Assembly: GCA_000320545.1 (NCBI GenBank)
Contig: ADNK01001857.1
Coordinates: 1 to 64,000, forward strand
DNA length: 64,000 nt
Direction: 5' to 3'
Source: Bigelowiella natans CCMP2755
Lineage: Eukaryota; Protista; Cercozoa
Below the pieces are notes generated by a model that was not told the DNA's origin, did not search any database, and was given only the letters and a program-made list of their open reading frames with translations. Below, piece by piece: positions 17,466-47,251 of the stretch (the stretch's first letter is position 1; the number at the start of each line of letters is the position of its first letter). The translations under genes and the position numbers were made by a program.

Positions 17466-19100
17466 AATCATGATTTTGAAGAAATGCATGGTCAAGTCAA
17501 TATGACGTCATCGACGTCGTCCTCCCCTCCATCAATCTTCTCGAGAAGTCCCTCAATTCTGCGCCACATTCTGAAACCGTAATAATGATAATAAGAAGAA
17601 CAATAACAACAATAACTACAACAAACGATGATGATTATAACAACACAGTAGTCGTAAGAGAAATAAAAAATAGTAATAATAGTCAACGCACAATGCTAAA
17701 TATAGACATATAGGAAGAGAGAGAGAGAGAGAGATACCAAATCACACCGCCATTATTATAATATATTAAGCAGTAGTCTCCTCTCTCTCCCTCTTTCTCT
17801 CTCTTGAGAATTCTAATAATAATAGGCTGGTTGTGGTCTCCGTACACGCTAGTAAGCACTTAAGAAAGAATAATGACGTTGCAGCTGTGCAAAAAGGAGG
17901 TGATAATGAAAAGGATATCTTAGAGAAGAAGAAGAACAACAACAACATGATGAGAATGTGTCAGAGTAATGGTAATAACAATAACACTAAGAATATCCAC
18001 TCTTATTCCTTGGAGCCTAGTAGTTAAATTCTTATTTGACGTTATCATTCTAACTGTTATAATCATTATTATAATTATCATCAGCAACATCATCATCACT
18101 ACCGCCGTCGTTGTGTAGTACAAGGAAGTGGACATGTGAAATGGGTACAGTGCTAAGATTCTGTATAAAGGCAAAGTCGATGTTACTGCTGTCATCAAGC
18201 ACCACCACAACATGTGCTCAAGGACGTGCTGCCAGCAGTAGTAGTTCTTCTTCCTCTTCTTCCAGTTATGTTCTCTCAGTAGTACCGCAGCGAAAGCAGC
18301 ACCAATGGAATGATGATGAGCACAGTAGTAGTAATGCCATAGAAATGGAGGAGAATAGGAAACTAGGACGATGCCACCTGGACTGCAACAACAACAACAA
18401 CTACTACTACGACTACTACTATGGCAGTGATCGCTACAACAGAAACAGCAGCAGCAGCAGAAGGACCTGTCATACTACTTCTACTACTACTCCTATTGAT
18501 AATTATGACAACGACAACAACACTGCTTCTTTCATACCAATAGGCCATGTACAATCACACATTCCATACAACGCTGAAACAGCATCTCATTGCAGAGAAG
18601 TAGATCATAATCATCATCATGCTGAGGACGGTGACAAATCACTGCAAACTTCAGATGTAGTACCATTAGCTCTGGATAACGATGATGGCTCTATTTCTTC
18701 TCCTTCCCAGCAGCAATTTGAGCACACCCAATCGGTGAAGTAGTAGCAGTAGTAGTAGTAGTAGTAGCAGCAGCAGCAGCGATATCCTAAATATTATATA
18801 TGATTAATATTTGCAATCTGTCTTGATTAACTGATGATGATGATGGTGATGATGATGATGATGTGTATGTGTGTGTGTGTGTGTGTGTTTCACATCAGAT
18901 ATTATTCCTCAAGACGGGTGAATTTCATTTCAAAGCTAAATGTTCATTTGTTAGTCCACAGCAACCACATTTGGTAAACATCAAATAATTGTGCACGTAA
19001 ATTTGTGATGATCAACTCGATATATCCATTTTCTTTAAAGGTTCTTGCTGAAGAGTCGTTTGTCGTAGAAGTAATTCCTCCCGCTGGAGAAAGAGAATGA
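547..19100 (+). CDS. TRS120: TRAPP II subunit Trs120/TRAPPC9, ~18.5 kb with dozens of small exons
   Basis: Stitched exons: MTSF...SIKIILAPLG (547-690); DSPFRNW; VHIRF; SDWEELHVHRK|AFAVIGVVHCPS; FQIYAFEPG..EVILFPNQ|DQEHTTFYITTILSDL; ARRQKYVADFCIL|AGAAIDARKYYKE|ALDLARQASDFIW|AGAALEGLAAC; C-terminal ILFLKTGEFHF..VLAEESFVVEVIPPAGERE*. These are colinear with recalled plant TRS120 and human TRAPPC9 motifs (WEDFQSNRKILAVIG..HCPS; GDY.LLAG; D..W.AGALEG). Middle exons are not all resolved. Confidence 0.92.
740..18890. repeat. Dense microsatellite field: (GAT)n, (GTA)n, (GAA)n, (GGA)n, (CA)n, (CT)n, (TA)n in introns and some exons
   Basis: Directly visible. The same pattern occurs at about 30000-41800, 46900-48700 and 54400-57750, and explains the homopolymer ORFs in the track. 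Confidence 0.97.
16316..16477. repeat. 54-bp tandem repeat x3 in a TRS120 intron
   Basis: Unit aaccatcaatatctcttgcttct(t/a)ctcaacattctccttcctctcctccttctc starts at 16316, 16370 and 16424. Confidence 0.93.
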
Positions 19101-19278: not shown

Positions 19279-19777
19279 CGTCCATGCGATGCGTGCAATG
19301 AAATAAGCCGTACGCAAGTAAACAGGTGAAGCGTGCTGTGTCACTGTTTTTTGCACATGTTGCATCTTGGCGAAATGTGTTGCCGACTACGATCCGATCC
19401 TGCATGCTCACCCGTTCACATCAAAATGCAGTTGTGAAGAAAGTCACAGCACACGTGACAACAAACGCCACACACCGCCATCGGCTTTCGTGTCGTTGCA
19501 CTTCTAGATTTGCTCGTGATGACTAGATGATGCACACCACCGAGCAATCATCGCTAGTGAAGTCATGCGTGTAGATGCCGATGTGGCTAACTAGCACACT
19601 GCTGTTGCGTTCATTTGACGATCAAATCAACACTGCATGTGCGTATGTTGCGGTGCATGTAGCTACCTAACCGACTCGATGACATCGTAACCGATCACAG
19701 TCTAGCAGTAGCGCATGCAGCATTCGTATGTCTAGATGTTTAGCATAGCATTCGTGTGTCTAGATGTTTAGCACACC

Positions 19778-19966: not shown

Positions 19967-20917
19967 TTATATTCTCTGAGTGTGAAGGAGCATCGGATTG
20001 AGCATTGGATTTCGTCCATTATCATTCTGTCTGTTTACAGGCTTTACTCGAATTTCATCATTCATAATCTTAACATTAATAGATCCTTTTCGTTGGCCAG
20101 CATCTCTCCAACGATGTATACTGTTTCCTGTTCTGCACCATCCCCTGCTGCTGCTGCTGCTACTACTACTACTACTACTACTACTAATATCTTGATGTGA
20201 TCCACGGTAAAAATACTGCTGCCTGCTACGATTTTCAAGCCGCTGCCGTGATGATGACGATGATGAAGACAACGAGTCTGTGCAGATTAGCATATATATA
20301 TAATCTCTTCTTACGAACAACAGATAAAGCATTCTTGCTGTGCAGGTACTTGATACTACAACTCATAACTACTACTACTACTACTACTACTACCTGTTGC
20401 GAGGAGTGTGAGAGATGGATGAGTATTCATATCGACTATCTCTTCCCCTCCTCCTCCTCGTCTCCCTGTCCTTCTCCAGCCACCACCATTTCCTCGTCCT
20501 CTTCCTCCCCCCCCTCCCCCTCTTCCTCCTCCTCCACCATGGGGTAATGCTCGCAATCGTTTTGCTTGCGGTTGTACAGCCTATATAAAGTTGAAGTAGC
20601 ACACAACAATAGTCAAGGATATAATGATGGTACTAATGATGAGAGACATATCATGATAAATAGAAGATTTGCACCCCTTTCAATACTGCATTTATTTCTC
20701 TAAAAATGCTAATCTTATACCCTTTTGCTGCCCCCCCTGCTGCCGAAGTTAGGTCTTCTCTTCTGGAAACACAAAATACCAAATCATCATCATCATCATC
20801 ATCAGCATCATCATCACAACCACCATTATTGCAAACTTCTGATCATCTTTTTTTTAACTCAGTAGGCACAACAACTTGATTATTTATATTTATACACAAT
20901 TAACTCATGCTTTATGG

Positions 20918-38256: not shown

Positions 38257-40422
38257 TTTTGGACAGCTCGCCATCCAAAAATCCTGATTTATGAGCGATA
38301 CTCTTCTTCAGATATGCGGGTCATATATTTATGCTACTGCTGCTGCTGCTGCTATTCTATTTTTAAATAGGAAAACAATGATGATGGTGATGATGATTTG
38401 ATAATTTGATGATTTGATGATGATTATGATGATTATGATGAAGATTGTGCTGCATGCAAGTTATGCATGTATGTATGTAGGTATTTATAGTTCTACACAT
38501 GATTGATGCTAGACGAAGAATAACGGGGGGGGGGGGACTGACATTAGATGTGTAAAAGCAGCCGCTATTCCCATTAAAGCACCTCCCAAATGACAGCTAT
38601 GATCTGATGCTCCAACTGAATATCCTAAGTTATAATAATGATAATCCATAACACCGACAACGACAAAACAGCAGCAGCATCGAGGACGAAGATGAGTACC
38701 AGTATTTCGCAACAACGCATGGAACGATGATCTATTGCGTGATAATAATGACTTGTATTGAAGTGCATTCTCACTTATTCCAGCAAGAAGAAGTCGACCA
38801 CTACTAGTGATATTAATACTAATATATTCATTCAAATTGTTCGTTGTCCTCATATCATCATCATCATCATCATCATCATCATCGTCGTCGTCATATGATA
38901 TAAGTAAAAGTGATCATAATTCATAGGAGGAGATTATTTTTGTTATGATGCCTACTAACATGCTACTTGATACAACCAAGTGCTAGGCTATCAAATGCTT
39001 TGAGGAATGCGGTCTTTATCAGATACATGTACATCCTAGTGTGTCGTTAACGACGTAGGGAAAGGGAAAAGGAGAGGAGGAGGAGGAGGAGGAGGAGGAA
39101 GAAGAAGAAGAAGAAGAAGAAGAGGAGGACAGAAAAAGTACTCTGTGATGGTATGTACAAGCTCATTGGATTTATATGTGATATACATGTAGTAAATATA
39201 TAGTAATAGTAGTAGTAGTAGTGCAATTTGAAGAGCAGCACCAGTCAGTGTTGCTCAATCCTGATGATGAGAAATTAGCCTGTAGTAGAGGTAGTACCCC
39301 TACCATCAGTATCGTTGACATCTGAATACCAAATGGAATTATCATTATCGAAACAACAACCCATAACCGATCATGATGATGATGATGATAATTGTGCATT
39401 TGGGTCCTCACATCAAGAAAAATGATAATGATGACAATTACAGTATTTAGAGTATCATTGTCATTCAACTATGCACAGCTTATCACATCACCAGGAATGG
39501 TCTTTTTATCGGTTTCTTGCGGGCAGATGCAGGATTTGAGGCAGCAGCATGAGTTTTTTTATCATCATCATGATCTTGAGCTGTTGGTGTTGCCCTTTTC
39601 TTCTTCTTCTTCTTCTCTGTTCCTTTGGAATGCACTTCTTTTGTTGTTTTTGTGCAGAGAGAATGAAGCAGGGAAGATGATGGAATACTTGCCACAACAT
39701 CCAAAATGCCATATCTATTGAATAATAAGAGTAAGGTAGGAGGAGGAAGGATGGGTACTGATGATATATACCTCGAATTTAAAGCAACAGGTAGCAACCA
39801 AACAAGCCACTGCCACACCTGTACAAATAGACGTGCTTTTTTTAATAACGATGTCATTCGTTGATAGAGGAGAAGCATTAACAGCAGCAGCAGCAGGAGG
39901 AGGAGGAGGAGGAGGAGGAGGAGGAGGAGGAAGAAGTAATAGTAGGTGATAGCACCCATGCTGGTATTCCGGCAGAATCTGCAACTCTGCCATTGCGACA
40001 TTAAGAAGTAGCAGCAGTCGTCATCGTATTTATCCACCAAAGTCACGAGAGTCAAAATAAATCATAATTTCAATACAAAAGTATCGTTCAAGAATCTGTG
40101 CACTACGACTATCATAATTGATTCTAAATATCAAATTGCATTCTTACTATCATTTCAGCATCATCATCATCATTTTAACCGCTGTATGTTGTCATTGCCA
40201 ACTTCGGTTTTCCTCTCATTCATTAATCACCATCACCACCACCACCACCACCATCATCACCATCAGCAGCAGCATCAGCTAGTATTACTCACTCTATGGT
40301 ACTATCGATTCTCCCCATTTGCCCACCTTCATCATCGTACTACGCTCTACTCTGCTGCTGCTGCTGCTGCTGGTGGTGGTGGTGGTACTACTACTACTAC
40401 TACTACTACTACCACTACTACG

Positions 40423-40456
<34 letters not shown>

Positions 40457-41465
40457 ACCTGTGATTGGGATATGCAGCAGCTGCGAAGAACATTATACCG
40501 TATGTGGATGGGCTCGAGCCACACGTGCTCATAAACTTGGTGGCTGTGAGAAGAAGTACGTTGGAGGACCGCTCATAAATAAAACAGAGATCACCCAAAA
40601 CAGAAATCTTATGCTGCTAAATTTGCTTACCCACATTCCAAAGTTCGGGGTTGAGGTTGTAGTTACGTCGATAAGTCATCATAAAACCCGCTGCCCCAGT
40701 GAGGAAATATCTAAAATATTCATCCCAATATAACCATATGACATCGGGGCAGAAATTTCATATTGGTTCAGTAAAATTACATGAGATAAAGAAGAGCAAC
40801 TGTCCTTGCGAGAGGTAATCCTGCGTTTCCTCCTCCCTCTCCCTGCCCTCCTTCTCCTCCTCCTGCATCATGTTGTGTTAAGAGACTCTCCAGCCCACCC
40901 ATCACTGGTATCATCATTATCATATTGTTCACCTTCCACAACATACGATGGTACTACTCAATAATCTTATGATGATGATACTTTCTTTAAGATATGTTCT
41001 TCACCCATCGTGCCGATGATGGTGTGTTACTTTTTTTTATCAATTTGGGGGGTTAAATTGATATTTGAGTGAAAAATGGTGGAGCAAATTAGATTTCTGG
41101 TTACTTCTTACCAGATGAGAGATGCTTCCATGTGCTAGACCGGCTGTTACGAAGACCTTGTAGATGTGGTCAGCAGTGGATGTGTGCAATTTGGGATCAA
41201 ATCATGGGATCAAATCATCATTCAGTGAATGTACATCATAACAACAATAACACTAGTAGCAGGAGGAGGAGGCTAAAATTGTGCTCGCTACCCATGCTTT
41301 CCCGCTCTCCACTGCATCGCCAGAAAAGTGGATGTTTCCTGAATTCATTCTTTTCAAAAGGGGCAACGCAGAGACAAGCGTGGCTTTGTGTTGTTGCTTA
41401 TTTGCCTCCATGAGGAAATAAGTGAGGAAATTGAGGAGGGCAAGTGGCAGCCAGGTTGCACAGCT
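37616..41465 (-). CDS. Rhomboid-family intramembrane protease; true start unresolved, probably a further exon at ~41680-41820
   Basis: Phase-consistent exons: WLPLALLNFLTYFLM..GKAW|VFVTAGLAHGSISHL|VNNMIMMIPVMGGLESLL..LYLI|YFLTGAAGF..|STCGSSPSTYGIMFFAAAAYPNH..GIPAW|VWQWLVW....SDHSCHLGGALMG, then a C-terminal extension ending KRQKHE*. Confidence 0.85.
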
Positions 41466-42125
41466 ATGATGATGATGTTGTTGTTGATGATGATGAAAAT
41501 GGTGATCATGATCTCCAGCAGCAGCTGCAGCAGCCGCACCATCATGATATTGGAGCATGATGATGCTGACCAGGCAGAAGGAGGCAGCTGTGAGTGAGAT
41601 CATGATCATCATAATCAATAATGCCGTTAATTTATTCATATTTTCATCTATGTTTATCTCATATTTCAAAAAAAGCCCTGCTTTACTTCTACTATCGGTG
41701 CGACAAGTATAGATTGGTTGTCGTTCCTATCATTAGCAGTCGTATAATAACAACAACAACAACAAAGCAGAAGACAACACAAATCCATCCATCCATAGAG
41801 GGTTGGAAGAAAGAACCATCTTGTGCGCAAACCCACTCCTTCCCCGCACTACATCTCTCTCTTTCTCTTTTCTCTTTCACTCTCCTTCATCAAATAAGTC
41901 AATTTTTTCCAGCGATAAATTTTATGGCATAAAATTGCGGAGCAGTGGAGAATAGCAATCCAACGCCGCTGGGAAAACACCGCCAACAATTTCAACTACG
42001 TCACAACTAGCAGTTCAAAGGAGCAAAGCTACAACTACGAACGGTGGTGCATATCGCTATAGTGCCATTCCTGCAACACCATTTTCCACATTCCTGGATA
42101 AAAAACATTGAAGAATACAGCAACA

Positions 42126-42960
42126 ATGTCATCAAGAGCTAACACGAACACGAAGCAACCTATCCAAGACGATCGTTCCAACTCTTCATCAGAGTATCGT
42201 TCGGATGATGATTATGCATGGATTCCTTGGTACTGCTCTTTGGAGGGGAATGAGTTTTTTGCAGAAGTGGATGATCAATACGTCCAGGATGGATTTAATC
42301 TCACAGGATTGGGCCAGCAGGTGTGGAGAGACGGGGGGGGGATAAGATGAAGAACATATATAAAAATTAAATGAACGATATATATGGAAACAATGTGTGA
42401 TATTATCAACCAACTGACTTCCAGTTGCTATGTTCCAGGTTGTTTTCTACGATTGTGCCCTTGACATGATTCTCGATGTGGAGTCCTCTGATAATATTCT
42501 CGAAGATGAGCAGCAAGAAATGGTAGAAAATGATGCTGAGACACTCTATGGTCTTATTCATGCCCGCTATATTTTAACAAATCGTGGTTTACACGCGATG
42601 CTTCAAAAATATCATAACTGCGACTTTGGAATATGTCCACGAGTACTTTGCAAAGGCCACCCTTTGCTTCCAAAAGGGATCTCAGATACTTTAAATGAAG
42701 AGTCGGTCAAGCTCTATTGTGCCAAATGCGGAAATATCTATAATTCAAAATATAGTCGTCATGATCATGTCGACGGGGCCTTCTTTGGTACCACTTTTCC
42801 AAGCCTTTTCTTCCTTACGTTCCCTGAGTTAATGCCTCAGGGAAGTAAGGACAAGTTTCAACCAAAAGTTTTTGGGTTTAAAGTCAGTAAGAATGCGTAC
42901 AGCAAATCTTTGGAAGCTAAAAAGAAGCAAACTGCATCTTCGTATGAACGCAAAAAGTAA
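42126..42960 (+). CDS. CSNK2B: Casein kinase II regulatory beta subunit
   Basis: [31 protein letters not shown]..|[56 protein letters not shown]. Intron 42321-42438. Confidence 0.98.
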
Positions 42961-42989
42961 ACATGAAAATATAATCATATCTATCCGGC

Positions 42990-44120
42990 ACCCCTCCACA
43001 TCCATCTGACCATTGACCACACATGCACAATGTGCGTGTGGTGCACTGAGCGAGATGGACGCACTGCATGATGGTTCATATTTTTTCGTTGCACGATGCC
43101 ATGCTGGCATGATTGCGATGCCTCTGACACATGGTGCTCGCGATGATCATGGCAATGGCAAGCAACAATCGCTACAAATAGACACAACTCGGATGGCGGC
43201 AACCATGTGATCGACACAATCGACATCTCTAGATCTAGACTAGCGCATGCAGCTGTCATTGTCTCAAATGTCGATCATGCATGAATTAGTCTGGTGGTCT
43301 GAAGGTGAGCAAAATTCAGAATGACAATCATCAGATCGCATGCGAACAAAATGCAGGTGACAGCATCGATCTTCAGATCTTTTGCTGACAACTAGACAAG
43401 CAGCAGTTTGCGCAAGCAAGCTAGCAAGGCATGGAAATGGACAGGCGGGCACATGTTGTCATTGTTTGCACTCATTTGACCCCTGTCTAGATCTCAGCAG
43501 CAGCGACTAGCAATGCTGGCAGATGCGAATGACCAAATGAGCATGTGTTCCGGCCTCACCTTCAGGACCTCACTAGCTAGCTAGTCGCGTGCTAAGTGCT
43601 AGAGTGCCCAGTTCAAGTTCTGGTGTTCTGGTCTGTCATGTGTGACGCTTGAAACTGACGTTGTTGCGTTGCATCGTCGCATCGTGAGAAATGAATCTTT
43701 CCAAGGTGCAGTCCACACACACTGCTACTGGCACAGGATGTGGATGCAACTGCCCAGTTTCCTTCTGATCCCAACGACCAGACGAGCAAGCTGGCAAGAT
43801 GCAAATCGTGGCGAATCAAAGGAACAAGTGAAATGAGTGCAAGTGGGAGCAAGTTTCAGAGCAGGATGGAGAAGTTCGAGGGTTCCTTTGAGGAACGAAC
43901 AAACGAATGAGTGACGAAAGGAGTGATTTCGTTGGAGGTTGGAACGATCGTGGGATCGTGGGACACGCAGTCTAGCAGTGTTCGTCCATGTCCTCCTGAT
44001 CAACTGCATCACCAAGAAGAAAGACAAATGTTCAAGGGTCAAGATTCGAGATTCGTGTTCATTCGACTTTCCAACAAGATGTGCTACTAGCACTGTTCAA
44101 GAACTTGTCGCACAATGAGT
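42990..44120. other. Most extreme TpA-depleted spacer, downstream of CK2beta
   Basis: Manual count for 43261-44100 (840 bp): 14 TA, of which 10 CTAG, 2 CTAC, 1 CTAA, 1 TTAG. None outside CTA/TAG context. Confidence 0.9.
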
Positions 44121-44580
44121 GAAGTCTACGTCAAAAAAAGAAGCAGCAAATTCCTAAAGAAAATAAAGATGTTATCCCAGTTTCCTAAGAGGAGAACGTA
44201 AGAATCATGCTAAGAGGTATAACTATTGATCTAGAACAAAATATTTAGATATTTATTCGATATGTGTATTACATGCACATCATTACCTGCCAAGAAGAAA
44301 AAGAAGAAACCGGCTTTGATTCAATCGCGACACGCAAACAGAACGTCGCTCCATGCAAACCTGCAGAGATGTGATCTCCGATCGTTTGAGTGACGACGAC
44401 GAGTTTCTTGCGCTACTTTCTGGTGAAAATCCCGTGCATTTATTGAACAGTTTCAACACCCCGGCGATATTGGAAGAAGACCAGTAGCAAAGTGTTCCGA
44501 TACACCGATATTATTTAGATCCAAAGAGACAAGACGAAGTCCATAGAAGAGAGTTTGGATTGCTAAAGAGTTGTCTCATG
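44120..44580 (-). other. Possible spliced minus-strand transcript (lncRNA or decayed gene)
   Basis: Canonical-looking intron on the minus strand, CAG|GTAATG...TTCTCCTCTTAG|G at 44286-44185. No recognisable protein. Confidence 0.3.
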
Positions 44581-44746
44581 GTACTAAATTTGAGGTATTT
44601 GGTAGTTGTAAGAGAGAGAACGTTTGACCTTGAAGAGAAAACAGCACACCTCTTCTGAGCACATTCCTACCAGAGTTGCTTACCCCCTCTGGATCCGCAT
44701 TAAAACTACTTCCTTTTGAACGACACACCGCCAACTACAACCAACG

Positions 44747-46042
44747 ATGCCTGGAGCGAGTGGACGCAAAAAGCGTGAAGATTTGATGGGACCTGAAGAG
44801 GATGAGGGGATGGATGATGGCTTCGACGGTCCTTCCATTTTTGCAATCGTAGAAGACGGAATGATTCTAAAATTTATCTGTATTAGCCCCATTGACCATG
44901 AAGGAACAAATTGAACACAAAAGACAGGACATCCAAGATGATCTTGACGATACAAAAGATATGATTAACGAAGCGCAGGTATTTAAATTGCGTTATGCAT
45001 GCAATTTTGGATTTTGAGCTTGCATCTGTGGAACAGTCGGTGGGAGCGGCTACCAATAAGAAACTCGCAATGCAAAATGAGCAGCTTCGAAAAGCAAATG
45101 ATGATCTGGATGAAATCGACGGTAACAAATCTTGCTCTTCAGCAAAAACTACTTAGCCTTACAACACTGTTTCTAATCAGAGAATATGGATCAAGCCGAT
45201 CATTCGCTGTCCAGAATGGAAATGTGCTGTCTATTTGCACTATGCTGCTGCTGTTGCCACCCGTAAGTGACTTTTATCCAATATTTTACCCATAGATATC
45301 AACTGTATCTCTGATTTTGAATTTTCAGTGCTGGTCCTACCAAGAAGCAAAGGAAGGACGATCTCCCTGCGAGGGTATCATTATTATTGTTATTATTATT
45401 ATCATTATTTCCAACTGTGCATCTTCCCTCCTCTACTACTCGTGACACTCTTCCCCCTATCTCTTGCACTACTCGCATTTCGGTGCATACAAATAATTGA
45501 GAATTGAGGATTAATTTATGTGCTTTCATTTGTAATTAAAGCATGGACAAGTCGTGAAAACTAGGCAGCCGGGGAACAGACTTGATGAGAATGTATTATT
45601 AAAGCATTTATCTGGATGATGGGCACAAACTAATAACTTTGCAATTTTACAGGAGGAAGGACTTGATGACGAAGAACGTCATGAACGGAGAGTAGCGAAT
45701 AAACTCGATGATATCTCTGAAGGGCTCGATGTACTTAACGATCTTGCGAAGGTAAACACGTACAAAATGATCTAGAAAATTGCTCAGGTAGATAATTTTC
45801 AATTTCCAGGAACAAAACGAGCAGCTCAAAGAAACTAAGGAAATCAACGAAAAGCTCAGCGAGAAGATTGATGCCCAAAGGTATAATTCTAAAATAGGTC
45901 AGCGATATGTAGTATCCTGCAGTGAGTTCATTTTAAAAAAATCTTCCGAAATTTCCATGTAAGTGCTTCGATGTAATAAAATTCAATTTTTAGGGGAAGG
46001 ATCAAAGCCTCTGATAAACGTGGTAAACAGCTCCTCCGTTAA
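44747..46042 (+). CDS. SNAP-25 family (Qb,c) SNARE
   Basis: Two SNARE helices (DDLDDTKDMINEAQ|SVGAATNKKLAMQNEQLRKANDDLDEID|ENMDQADHSLSRM and LDDISEGLDVLNDLAK|EQNEQLKETKEINEKLSEKID..RIKASDKRGKQLLR*) linked by a Cys cluster CCLFALCCCCC. No TM anchor. Confidence 0.9.
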
Positions 46043-46933
46043 GAAATAGCAGTTCGAAGTTGCGAAATGATACCGGACAATACTTGGGATGAGACTAAGA
46101 AAGTTTGAAGCAACTAATTCATCCGGTTCTTATTTACAACATAAGACATGTTACGTCCTTCCGCGTAAGCGTTGGGTTGCGACAATGTTCACCTTGACGG
46201 TATTATCATGTAACTATAGCCCAGGCAGATGTTTTGCATAGCACTGTCCATCACGTGAATACGATACGTGCATCACTTTGACGTTCTTGCAATGTGATGC
46301 TTTGCATGCGTGTGTGTTTGTGTGTCTCGCGTCTAGTTATCGGTTTGTGCGCACTACACATATCGATAGCTAGCTACGAATACGCGCATAGAGCTAAAGA
46401 CGCTTGTCTCTATGCGTAGCAGCCAACAGCGCTATAATACAAGCGTTTGCTGTAGCCGTTACAGTATTGCAGTTAACGCAGCTACTTTTATTAGGATGAT
46501 ATGTGCAATTGAAAGAATTGAAACTTCGATCATCAGCACGCTCCTAGCTATATAGTATCTGTACGTACGTACGTCTAGAGCTAATCACGATCTCTAAAAC
46601 TTCGTGTATAATATGTTGTGCCTTATGGATCGAACTAGTTGCATGATGCGTCGTATTGCTACGAATCATCACAGCAGTGATGACTCATGCAGGTATAATA
46701 TGGATCATTCGATCATAGAACTAGCGTAGCTATTATCGTGTACACTGCGGCTTTGGTCACCTTAATAGTGTTTACTCTATATTTCTTTCTTGTCCCACCT
46801 AATTTTGCATTGCATCATATCGTCACATTTTTTATGATGGGCTCTTACCGCGTCATGGCAATGGATTGAAAAACATAGAATAAGGAGCAGAAGCCACAAA
46901 CATAATGTTGTACTTGTACTACTACTACTACTA

Positions 46934-47251
46934 CTACCATGGGCTCGTCAGAGAGTAGGCTCCTATTGCTCCGATGCCACTGCCAAAACTAGTCAAGAGA
47001 ATCAAAGTCTCGTAACTCAAGAAACCTGCGCTCAAACCTAAAGCATAAAAGAGTTATATCAGCATCTTTTGAGATAGTATTGTGGAGAAAATAAAAAGTA
47101 GTAACAACTCGTTTCGCCACACTTCGACAATACAAAATATAATAATAATCATCATCATTATCATCATCATTCCCACCATACCCAGAGGGAGTCTATATAA
47201 GTATCTAGGAAATGAGCAATAACCTCTTATTGTTGAGATGCTTCATGGACC

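Follow-up and report, generated by a model that had tools for sequence, protein, structure and literature searches.

A TpA-erased island in a head-to-tail spacer of Bigelowiella natans and its relation to TpA hypermutation

Why does a spacer of about 1.1 kb in Bigelowiella natans lack almost every TpA dinucleotide, and does the answer lie in the ends of the neighbouring genes or in the segment itself? We considered both questions for one locus in a 64-kb stretch of DNA (hereafter the window), for which the first-pass annotation had proposed an enzyme acting on T or A at convergent gene ends and leaving T:A to C:G transitions behind. The assembly comprises 91.4 Mb in 3736 contigs, of which the sampled DNA covered the window, 200 kb of contig C3597 and short loci.

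Composition and limits of the island

Between positions 43261 and 44100, a recount found 14 TpA against 55.8 expected from base composition (observed/expected, o/e, 0.25). All 14 of the 14 lay in CTA and/or TAG, and the motif [AGT]TA[ACT] (D-TA-H) was counted zero times, in agreement with the first-pass annotation on each of these points. The CpG o/e of the same interval was 0.70, compared to 0.69 over the entire window, which bears out the earlier statement that CpG is not depleted. The uninterrupted D-TA-H-free run (43080-44163, 1085 bp) was the longest within the window, where D-TA-H sites are spaced 21 bp apart on average and the second-longest free run measured 325 bp.

The island itself was placed at 42984-44096 (1113 bp, no strand assigned, 49% G+C, non-coding). 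It contains 20 TpA where ~72 (71.9) were expected: 13 in CTAG, six in half-sites (preceded by C or followed by G), and position 43079 has the only D-TA-H, against ~35 D-TA-H expected at its composition (Poisson P ~3e-14). The 600 bp on either side hold 29 and 21 D-TA-H, so that the left boundary is sharply defined (within 25 bp). The value of rho(TpA) was 0.28 for both the island and the 1-kb interval 43001-44000, and rho(CpA+TpG) was 1.63 and 1.66, respectively, so that the abundance of TG and CA remarked on earlier was also recovered. CA and TG were balanced in the island (115:111), and they were balanced in all other islands too. The tetranucleotide CTAG was 5.6-fold enriched relative to the rest of the window, meaning that it is more than spared, and GATC, CATG and GCA-type words were likewise raised.

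TAA is nearly absent from the island (one per strand), and because of this the 122-codon minus-strand ORF inside it, like the other long island ORFs, is expected. Pfam searches returned no domain in the ORFs of the island (no transposase, reverse transcriptase or viral domain) and no match for 10 ORFs inside other islands. An Rfam search with permissive thresholds over 40000-47000 gave neither a match nor a structure signal in the island, and terminal inverted repeats or a target-site duplication were sought at the island and not found. At the nucleotide level the island is single-copy in the genome apart from its right end, where ~60 bp are repeated, and a transition-blind BLAST search with purine/pyrimidine-coded sequences revealed nothing besides this repeat (R1, see below) above the level of reversed controls. 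The CpG count per kb of the island corresponded to the 83rd percentile of background 1-kb windows, and those of nine islands on C3597 to the 70th-100th percentiles. Since TpA mutation cannot alter CpG density, this high density argues that the ancestors of the islands were not typical AT-rich spacer.

Elsewhere in the window, a second TpA-poor spacer (19319-19644) contains a D-TA-H-free run of 325 bp with four CTAG, and (GTT)n and (GCT)n tracts border it. Judging from long ORFs at 18111-18743 on the plus strand and at 19967-20332 on the minus strand, the arrangement around this spacer may be convergent; Pfam lent it no support.

Mutation at TpA and the effect of neighbouring bases

A TpA mutator has already been published for B. 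natans (Mettrop et al., bioRxiv 2026, 10.64898/2026.01.13.699255), and in the literature collection that we searched no further paper dealt with it. That work observed the hypermutation appearing de novo in mutation-accumulation lines. Of 302 nuclear single-nucleotide mutations, 231 were located in two inserts, one from an NCLDV (186 kb) and one from a virophage (25 kb); A to G or T to C changes at TpA made up nearly all of the 231, at ~1000x the background rate. Within the viral insert, the rates for exons, introns and intergenic DNA were 3.3, 5.7 and 4.7 x 10^-7, respectively (Table S1, 10.64898/2026.01.13.699255). The preprint, whose focus is on the viral inserts and transposon-like coding sequences, also gives a genome-wide map of TpA-poor, CpA+TpG-rich 1-kb windows (cut-offs: rho TpA <= 0.43, rho CpA+TpG >= 1.52), with 124 clusters of at least three consecutive windows (10.64898/2026.01.13.699255).

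The published window scan would flag the island studied here, as the interval 43001-44000 passes both cut-offs (0.28 and 1.66). Just this one 1-kb window qualifies, its neighbours having rho above 0.5, and the stretch accordingly falls outside the clusters of three. Among 264 1-kb windows that we sampled, ~2.7% lay under the rho(TpA) cut-off of 0.43 and 6.8% over the rho(CpA+TpG) cut-off of 1.52. The genome contains a single NCLDV major-capsid locus, whose surroundings showed a TA o/e of 0.50 compared to the 0.45 reported (10.64898/2026.01.13.699255).

Over the 200 kb of C3597, D-TA-H-free islands of 400-2350 bp occurred about once per 20 kb. Islands of the window, of C3597 and of the R1 loci, 19 kb in total, were pooled to compare losses with gains: D-TA-H had fallen by 42 per kb, and D-CA-H and D-TG-H had risen by 2 x 20.4 per kb. 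This one-for-one replacement of TA by its transition products points to mutation and not to selection, and the balance of CA and TG indicates that the adenines of both strands have been mutated equally. A direct example comes from the second TpA-poor spacer of the window, where two adjacent 28-bp copies at 19713-19768 differ from each other solely by TA versus TG and TA versus CA. With a TA deficit equal to the CA/TG gain and with the de novo events in the laboratory lines, the part of the first-pass annotation that postulated a TpA-specific T:A to C:G mutator is well founded.

The bases around the target modulate its fate. Across the 19 kb of islands, D-TA-H was retained 0.02-fold (a value set by the definition of the islands), the half-sites CTAH and DTAG 0.22-fold, and CTAG 3.0-fold; half-sites had given rise to either possible product, CTGH and CCAH. 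We re-tallied by hand the 211 de novo events on scaffold 10 in Table S2 of the preprint (10.64898/2026.01.13.699255). TpA accounted for 206 of the 211, distributed as TAA 32, TAC 22, TAG 3, TAT 34, ATA 33, CTA 17, GTA 30 and TTA 35, with five others. Read on the edited strand, a G lay 3' of the edited A in 20 of the 206 events, whereas such sites make up 21-22% of TpA sites (background sample and capsid locus), corresponding to a relative de novo rate of ~0.4 (P ~1e-5). Editing is slower where a C stands two bases 5' of the edited A, and likewise where a G follows on its 3' side; in CTAG, both strands bear both impediments. Were the 5' C to act with comparable strength, the expected half-site retention would roughly equal the observed one.

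The main text of the preprint speaks of 'TpA' only and mentions neither flanking-base effects nor CTAG nor position relative to genes (10.64898/2026.01.13.699255). The flank rule is thus supported by the published de novo table yet unstated in the accompanying text, and it constrains the enzyme, arguing against an ADAR-like preference for a 3' G.

A separate feature of the scaffold 10 table is a strand asymmetry: read on the scaffold strand, A to G changes at TAG numbered 3 and the equivalent T to C changes at CTA 17 (P 0.003), possibly an effect of strand or gene orientation. This asymmetry is not discussed in the preprint (10.64898/2026.01.13.699255).

Slow editing does not account for the whole composition. 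In unbiased islands, the C-YR-G class was 2.5-fold and CTAG 3.3-fold enriched, and as TpA transitions neither create nor destroy C-YR-G, this excess exceeds what escape from mutation explains. These words may have been frequent in the ancestral DNA already, or else some other factor keeps them there.

Repeat modules and the origin of the segment

A copy of a dispersed ~55-bp repeat, R1 (44033-44095, plus strand), closes the island on its right side; the repeat has a conserved core of ~50 bp and a short GTGCT...AGCAC inverted repeat at its end. At least 13 other loci in the genome carry R1, and a search with a 33-mer gave seven with no more than 3 mismatches. R1 lay in TA-erased DNA at each of the ten other loci that were read, with a TA o/e of 0.09-0.27 around it in L003-L010, and the 300 bp upstream of R1 contained 0-2 D-TA-H in 8/8 scored loci. 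Two interpretations of R1 were dropped: it is not a constant 3' edge of islands, as the island stops at R1 in just 3/8 scored loci (the island at 42984-44096 included), and a Helitron-like reading of its end, suggested by a hairpin and CTAG in two copies, failed since the copy at 44033-44095 is without the terminal motif.

Immediately beyond R1 begins a duplicated 187-bp segment (44097-44286, plus strand) with normal TpA content, 95% identical to a copy on contig C644 (L002:1501-1687, G000:C644). Since it starts exactly where R1 ends, the island in fact extends no further to the right than 44096. Three of the approximately nine differences between the two copies of this segment are TA versus CA/TG.

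Other modules of 50-100 bp are common to independent islands, compared to 0 matches in 5 draws of length-matched non-island controls. A second module of 80-97 bp, with an identity that reaches 99% for two of the loci, was found at L015:8813-8906 (G000:C3597:48813-48906) and in L009, L005, L008 and L003; the sharing of this module by several islands suggests that islands draw part of their sequence from a shared stock of repeats. The first-pass annotation had named as an alternative that the spacers are copies of one TA-poor repeat family. This holds in part, insofar as islands share short repeat modules; most of the island is single-copy.

A Ty3-type LTR retrotransposon is located inside a TpA-erased island on C3597 (G000:C3597:69682-75398; L017:9682-10000 and L018:1-5398). 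It has a 1659-codon ORF with reverse transcriptase and RNase H and 327-bp LTRs that are 100% identical, and the element itself is unmutated. That such a young element remains unmutated within an island implies that islands are old and that hypermutation does not set in immediately after an insertion. The element may prefer TpA-erased DNA.

Taken with the composition, these observations make it probable that the island is a discrete repeat-derived segment that was hypermutated to saturation by the known TpA process. R1 at the edge, the shared modules, the high CpG and the sharp left edge are the grounds for favouring this account, which agrees with the interpretation of the targets as foreign DNA in the preprint (10.64898/2026.01.13.699255). 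A segment of ~1.1 kb would have been struck on both strands until the freely editable TpA, those in D-TA-H, were gone; slower editing at sites with C before T or G after A would have left a few half-sites, and CTAG, protected on both strands, would have survived. The segment would most likely derive from a repeat or mobile element rather than from ordinary host spacer, and adenine deamination would be the leading candidate for the chemistry. Counting against a mobile or foreign origin, the island is single-copy apart from R1 and has neither a domain nor terminal repeats. The enrichment of CTAG and C-YR-G counts against this account as a full explanation, since escape from TpA mutation cannot produce it.

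Flanking genes, rival explanations and comparison with known systems

The gene upstream of the island encodes casein kinase II beta (CK2-beta). Its last coding ORF (42430-42960, plus strand) matched the Pfam family CK_II_beta (E 3.6e-55, 187 bits) and ends in a stop codon (42958-42960); further upstream is an exon ORF at 42108-42350, with an ATG at 42126. The island begins 23 bp past this stop codon, a distance at which it must include the CK2-beta 3' UTR, and ends ~650 bp ahead of the start codon of the next gene. That gene (44747-45960, plus strand, ATG at 44747) is SNAP-25-like (a Qb/Qc SNARE), as judged from ORF segments with SNARE heptads, separated on the plus strand by AT-rich gaps bounded by GT..AG (44978-45018, from 45122 on, and 45753-45809). 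The SNARE exons were searched individually: single exons gave no match in Pfam, two exons gave none by phmmer against PDB sequences, and language-model look-ups yielded sub-threshold leads to V-SNARE_C and SNAP-25 clusters. The minus strand downstream of the island has no ORFs comparable to the plus-strand SNARE segments. Gene strands were called from long ORFs, Pfam and splice-site reading, as a codon-usage score and k-mer strand asymmetry were too noisy. Between the island and the SNARE start codon there is also a 55-codon acidic ORF (44320-44484, plus strand), which might represent an upstream ORF or a first exon, or have no significance.

The spacer that carries the island is therefore head-to-tail between CK2-beta and the SNAP-25-like gene, both on the plus strand. 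The convergent gene ends proposed in the first-pass annotation do not exist here, and the island is a clean counter-example to the idea that islands mark convergent termination zones.

We then considered the relation of islands to gene ends in an unbiased sample of ten. Seven had at least one well-supported flanking gene, and each of these (7/7) borders a gene 3' end on one flank or both. Chance alone would give 75%, and the excess falls short of significance (P ~0.13). Demonstrated convergent spacers were none among the ten. At least four islands lie in tandem spacers (42984-44096, C3597:87272, C3597:137024 and C3597:155954). One island lies 79 bp upstream of the ORF of a gene with an N6-adenineMlase domain, and another lies 320 bp upstream of an Acyl_transf_3 gene. 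A divergent context for the island at C3597:35105-35867 was not upheld by the codon-score filter. Surviving islands may be biased towards 3' flanks. As for the claim that the process is tied to gene 3' ends or termination zones, it is contradicted by these tandem-spacer islands and by the viral insert, whose exons, introns and intergenic DNA mutate alike (10.64898/2026.01.13.699255).

A milder form of the same idea is that the TpA mutator is aimed by position or transcription, for example through 3' flank read-through, antisense or double-stranded RNA, or termination chromatin, and rewrites host spacer. We regard this as unlikely, although it fares best among the rivals. The start of the island 23 bp past the CK2-beta stop would be odd for a simple insertion and is compatible with a position-dependent trigger; the 7/7 islands that adjoin a gene 3' end point in the same direction, and the authors of the preprint suggested RNA guidance of the mutator (10.64898/2026.01.13.699255). 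However, that proportion is close to the chance level given above, the tandem-spacer islands lie as near the start of the next gene as the stop of the previous one, and better tolerance of insertions in 3' flanks would yield the same bias. The absence of any CA/TG strand skew between two plus-strand genes speaks against a transcription-strand-coupled process at a terminator. R1 and the other repeat modules, moreover, are confined to islands, and the similar rates in all three classes of sequence within the viral insert do not suggest a positional target.

Islands might instead be CTAG-rich, repeat-seeded spacers of ~1 kb, mostly downstream of genes, that serve as a programmed target of the mutator via small RNA or chromatin, with CTAG actively protected (e.g., by CTAG-specific methylation) and with a boundary or termination role. 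The sole hints in this direction are the 2.5-3.3-fold C-YR-G/CTAG excess and the restriction of R1 to islands, and we consider it improbable.

More doubtful still appears the model in which convergent Pol II termination zones bear a thymine modification akin to base J or of the TET/JBP type, or some other DNA mark, and the transitions arise as a side effect. The sequence specificity of the process and the sparing of palindromic CTAG would suit a modification enzyme, and the model could draw on the CTAG excess left over by the escape account. The locus, however, is not convergent, and the products CA and TG are symmetric. The de novo mutations occurred across a silent viral insert of 186 kb and not at termination zones (10.64898/2026.01.13.699255). 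A search of the 91 Mb genome for Tet_JBP (PF12851) gave no match, a weak argument because control genomes were equally silent. The thymine oxidation by a TET/JBP-type enzyme that the first-pass annotation had listed as a candidate thus gained no support from this search, with the same reservation about the controls.

The weakest rival is selection, by which a long UTR or non-coding RNA would have shed UA-rich motifs that act in polyadenylation or decay or are sensitive to nucleases; foreign DNA that was TA-poor from the outset belongs to the same rival. UA is an RNA-decay target and a component of many poly(A) signals, and the island must contain the CK2-beta 3' UTR. Selection is nevertheless hardly credible, as the TA loss is matched one-for-one by CA and TG, D-TA-H fell from ~35 expected to 1 while TAG and CTA remain, both strands are equal, no Rfam family or structure signal was found, and in laboratory lines the process has been seen to occur as mutation (10.64898/2026.01.13.699255).

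The hypermutated repeat-derived segment therefore remains our preferred account, and its T:A to C:G process at TpA probably operates by adenine deamination. This was one of the two chemistries listed in the first-pass annotation, and it is kept as the leading candidate, the CA and TG products being equal. The preprint likewise proposed adenine deamination and favoured an ADAT2 homologue among five predicted adenosine deaminases (10.64898/2026.01.13.699255). Our search identified six CDA-fold deaminase loci in the genome. A further candidate, put forward from its sequence, is the sole A_deamin (ADAR/ADAT1-type) locus in the genome (G000:C2414:14438-15741, plus strand), which is split over three matches and could encode an adenine deaminase behind the hypermutation. 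R1, as a small repeat family confined to islands, could help to find the target of the mutator.

Among known systems, base J of the kinetoplastid convergent Pol II termination regions resembles the island only as a thymine-directed mark near gene ends. The spacer here is non-convergent with both flanking genes on the plus strand, so the analogy drawn in the first-pass annotation does not carry over, and what is seen here is a fixed sequence change where base J is a modification.

Adenosine deamination by ADAR/ADAT enzymes is closer in its A-to-G outcome and in the preference for T/U 5' of the edited A. The substrate in B. natans is genomic DNA, by contrast, and both strands are struck. ADARs prefer a 3' G, whereas in B. 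natans a 3' G is disfavoured (~0.4-fold) and TAG/CTA are the surviving contexts.

Fungal RIP shares with the islands dinucleotide-context transitions that saturate discrete, sharply bounded and often repeat-derived segments and leave a strong dinucleotide skew. Its direction is the opposite one, as the first-pass annotation had noted: RIP converts CpA to TpA and enriches TpA, while the island has lost TpA and gained CpA and TpG. The B. natans process likely involves adenine and not cytosine deamination, the island is mostly single-copy (~60 bp repeated), and there is no known link to a sexual cycle. The B. natans process is a TpA-specific A:T to G:C hypermutation in a eukaryote, possibly a form of genome defence.

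Compared to the hypermutated clusters of the preprint, the island has the same dinucleotide target and the same products, and differs in being a single 1.1-kb non-coding stretch. To the known process it adds a non-convergent counter-example, a quantitative flank rule and the island-confined repeat family R1.
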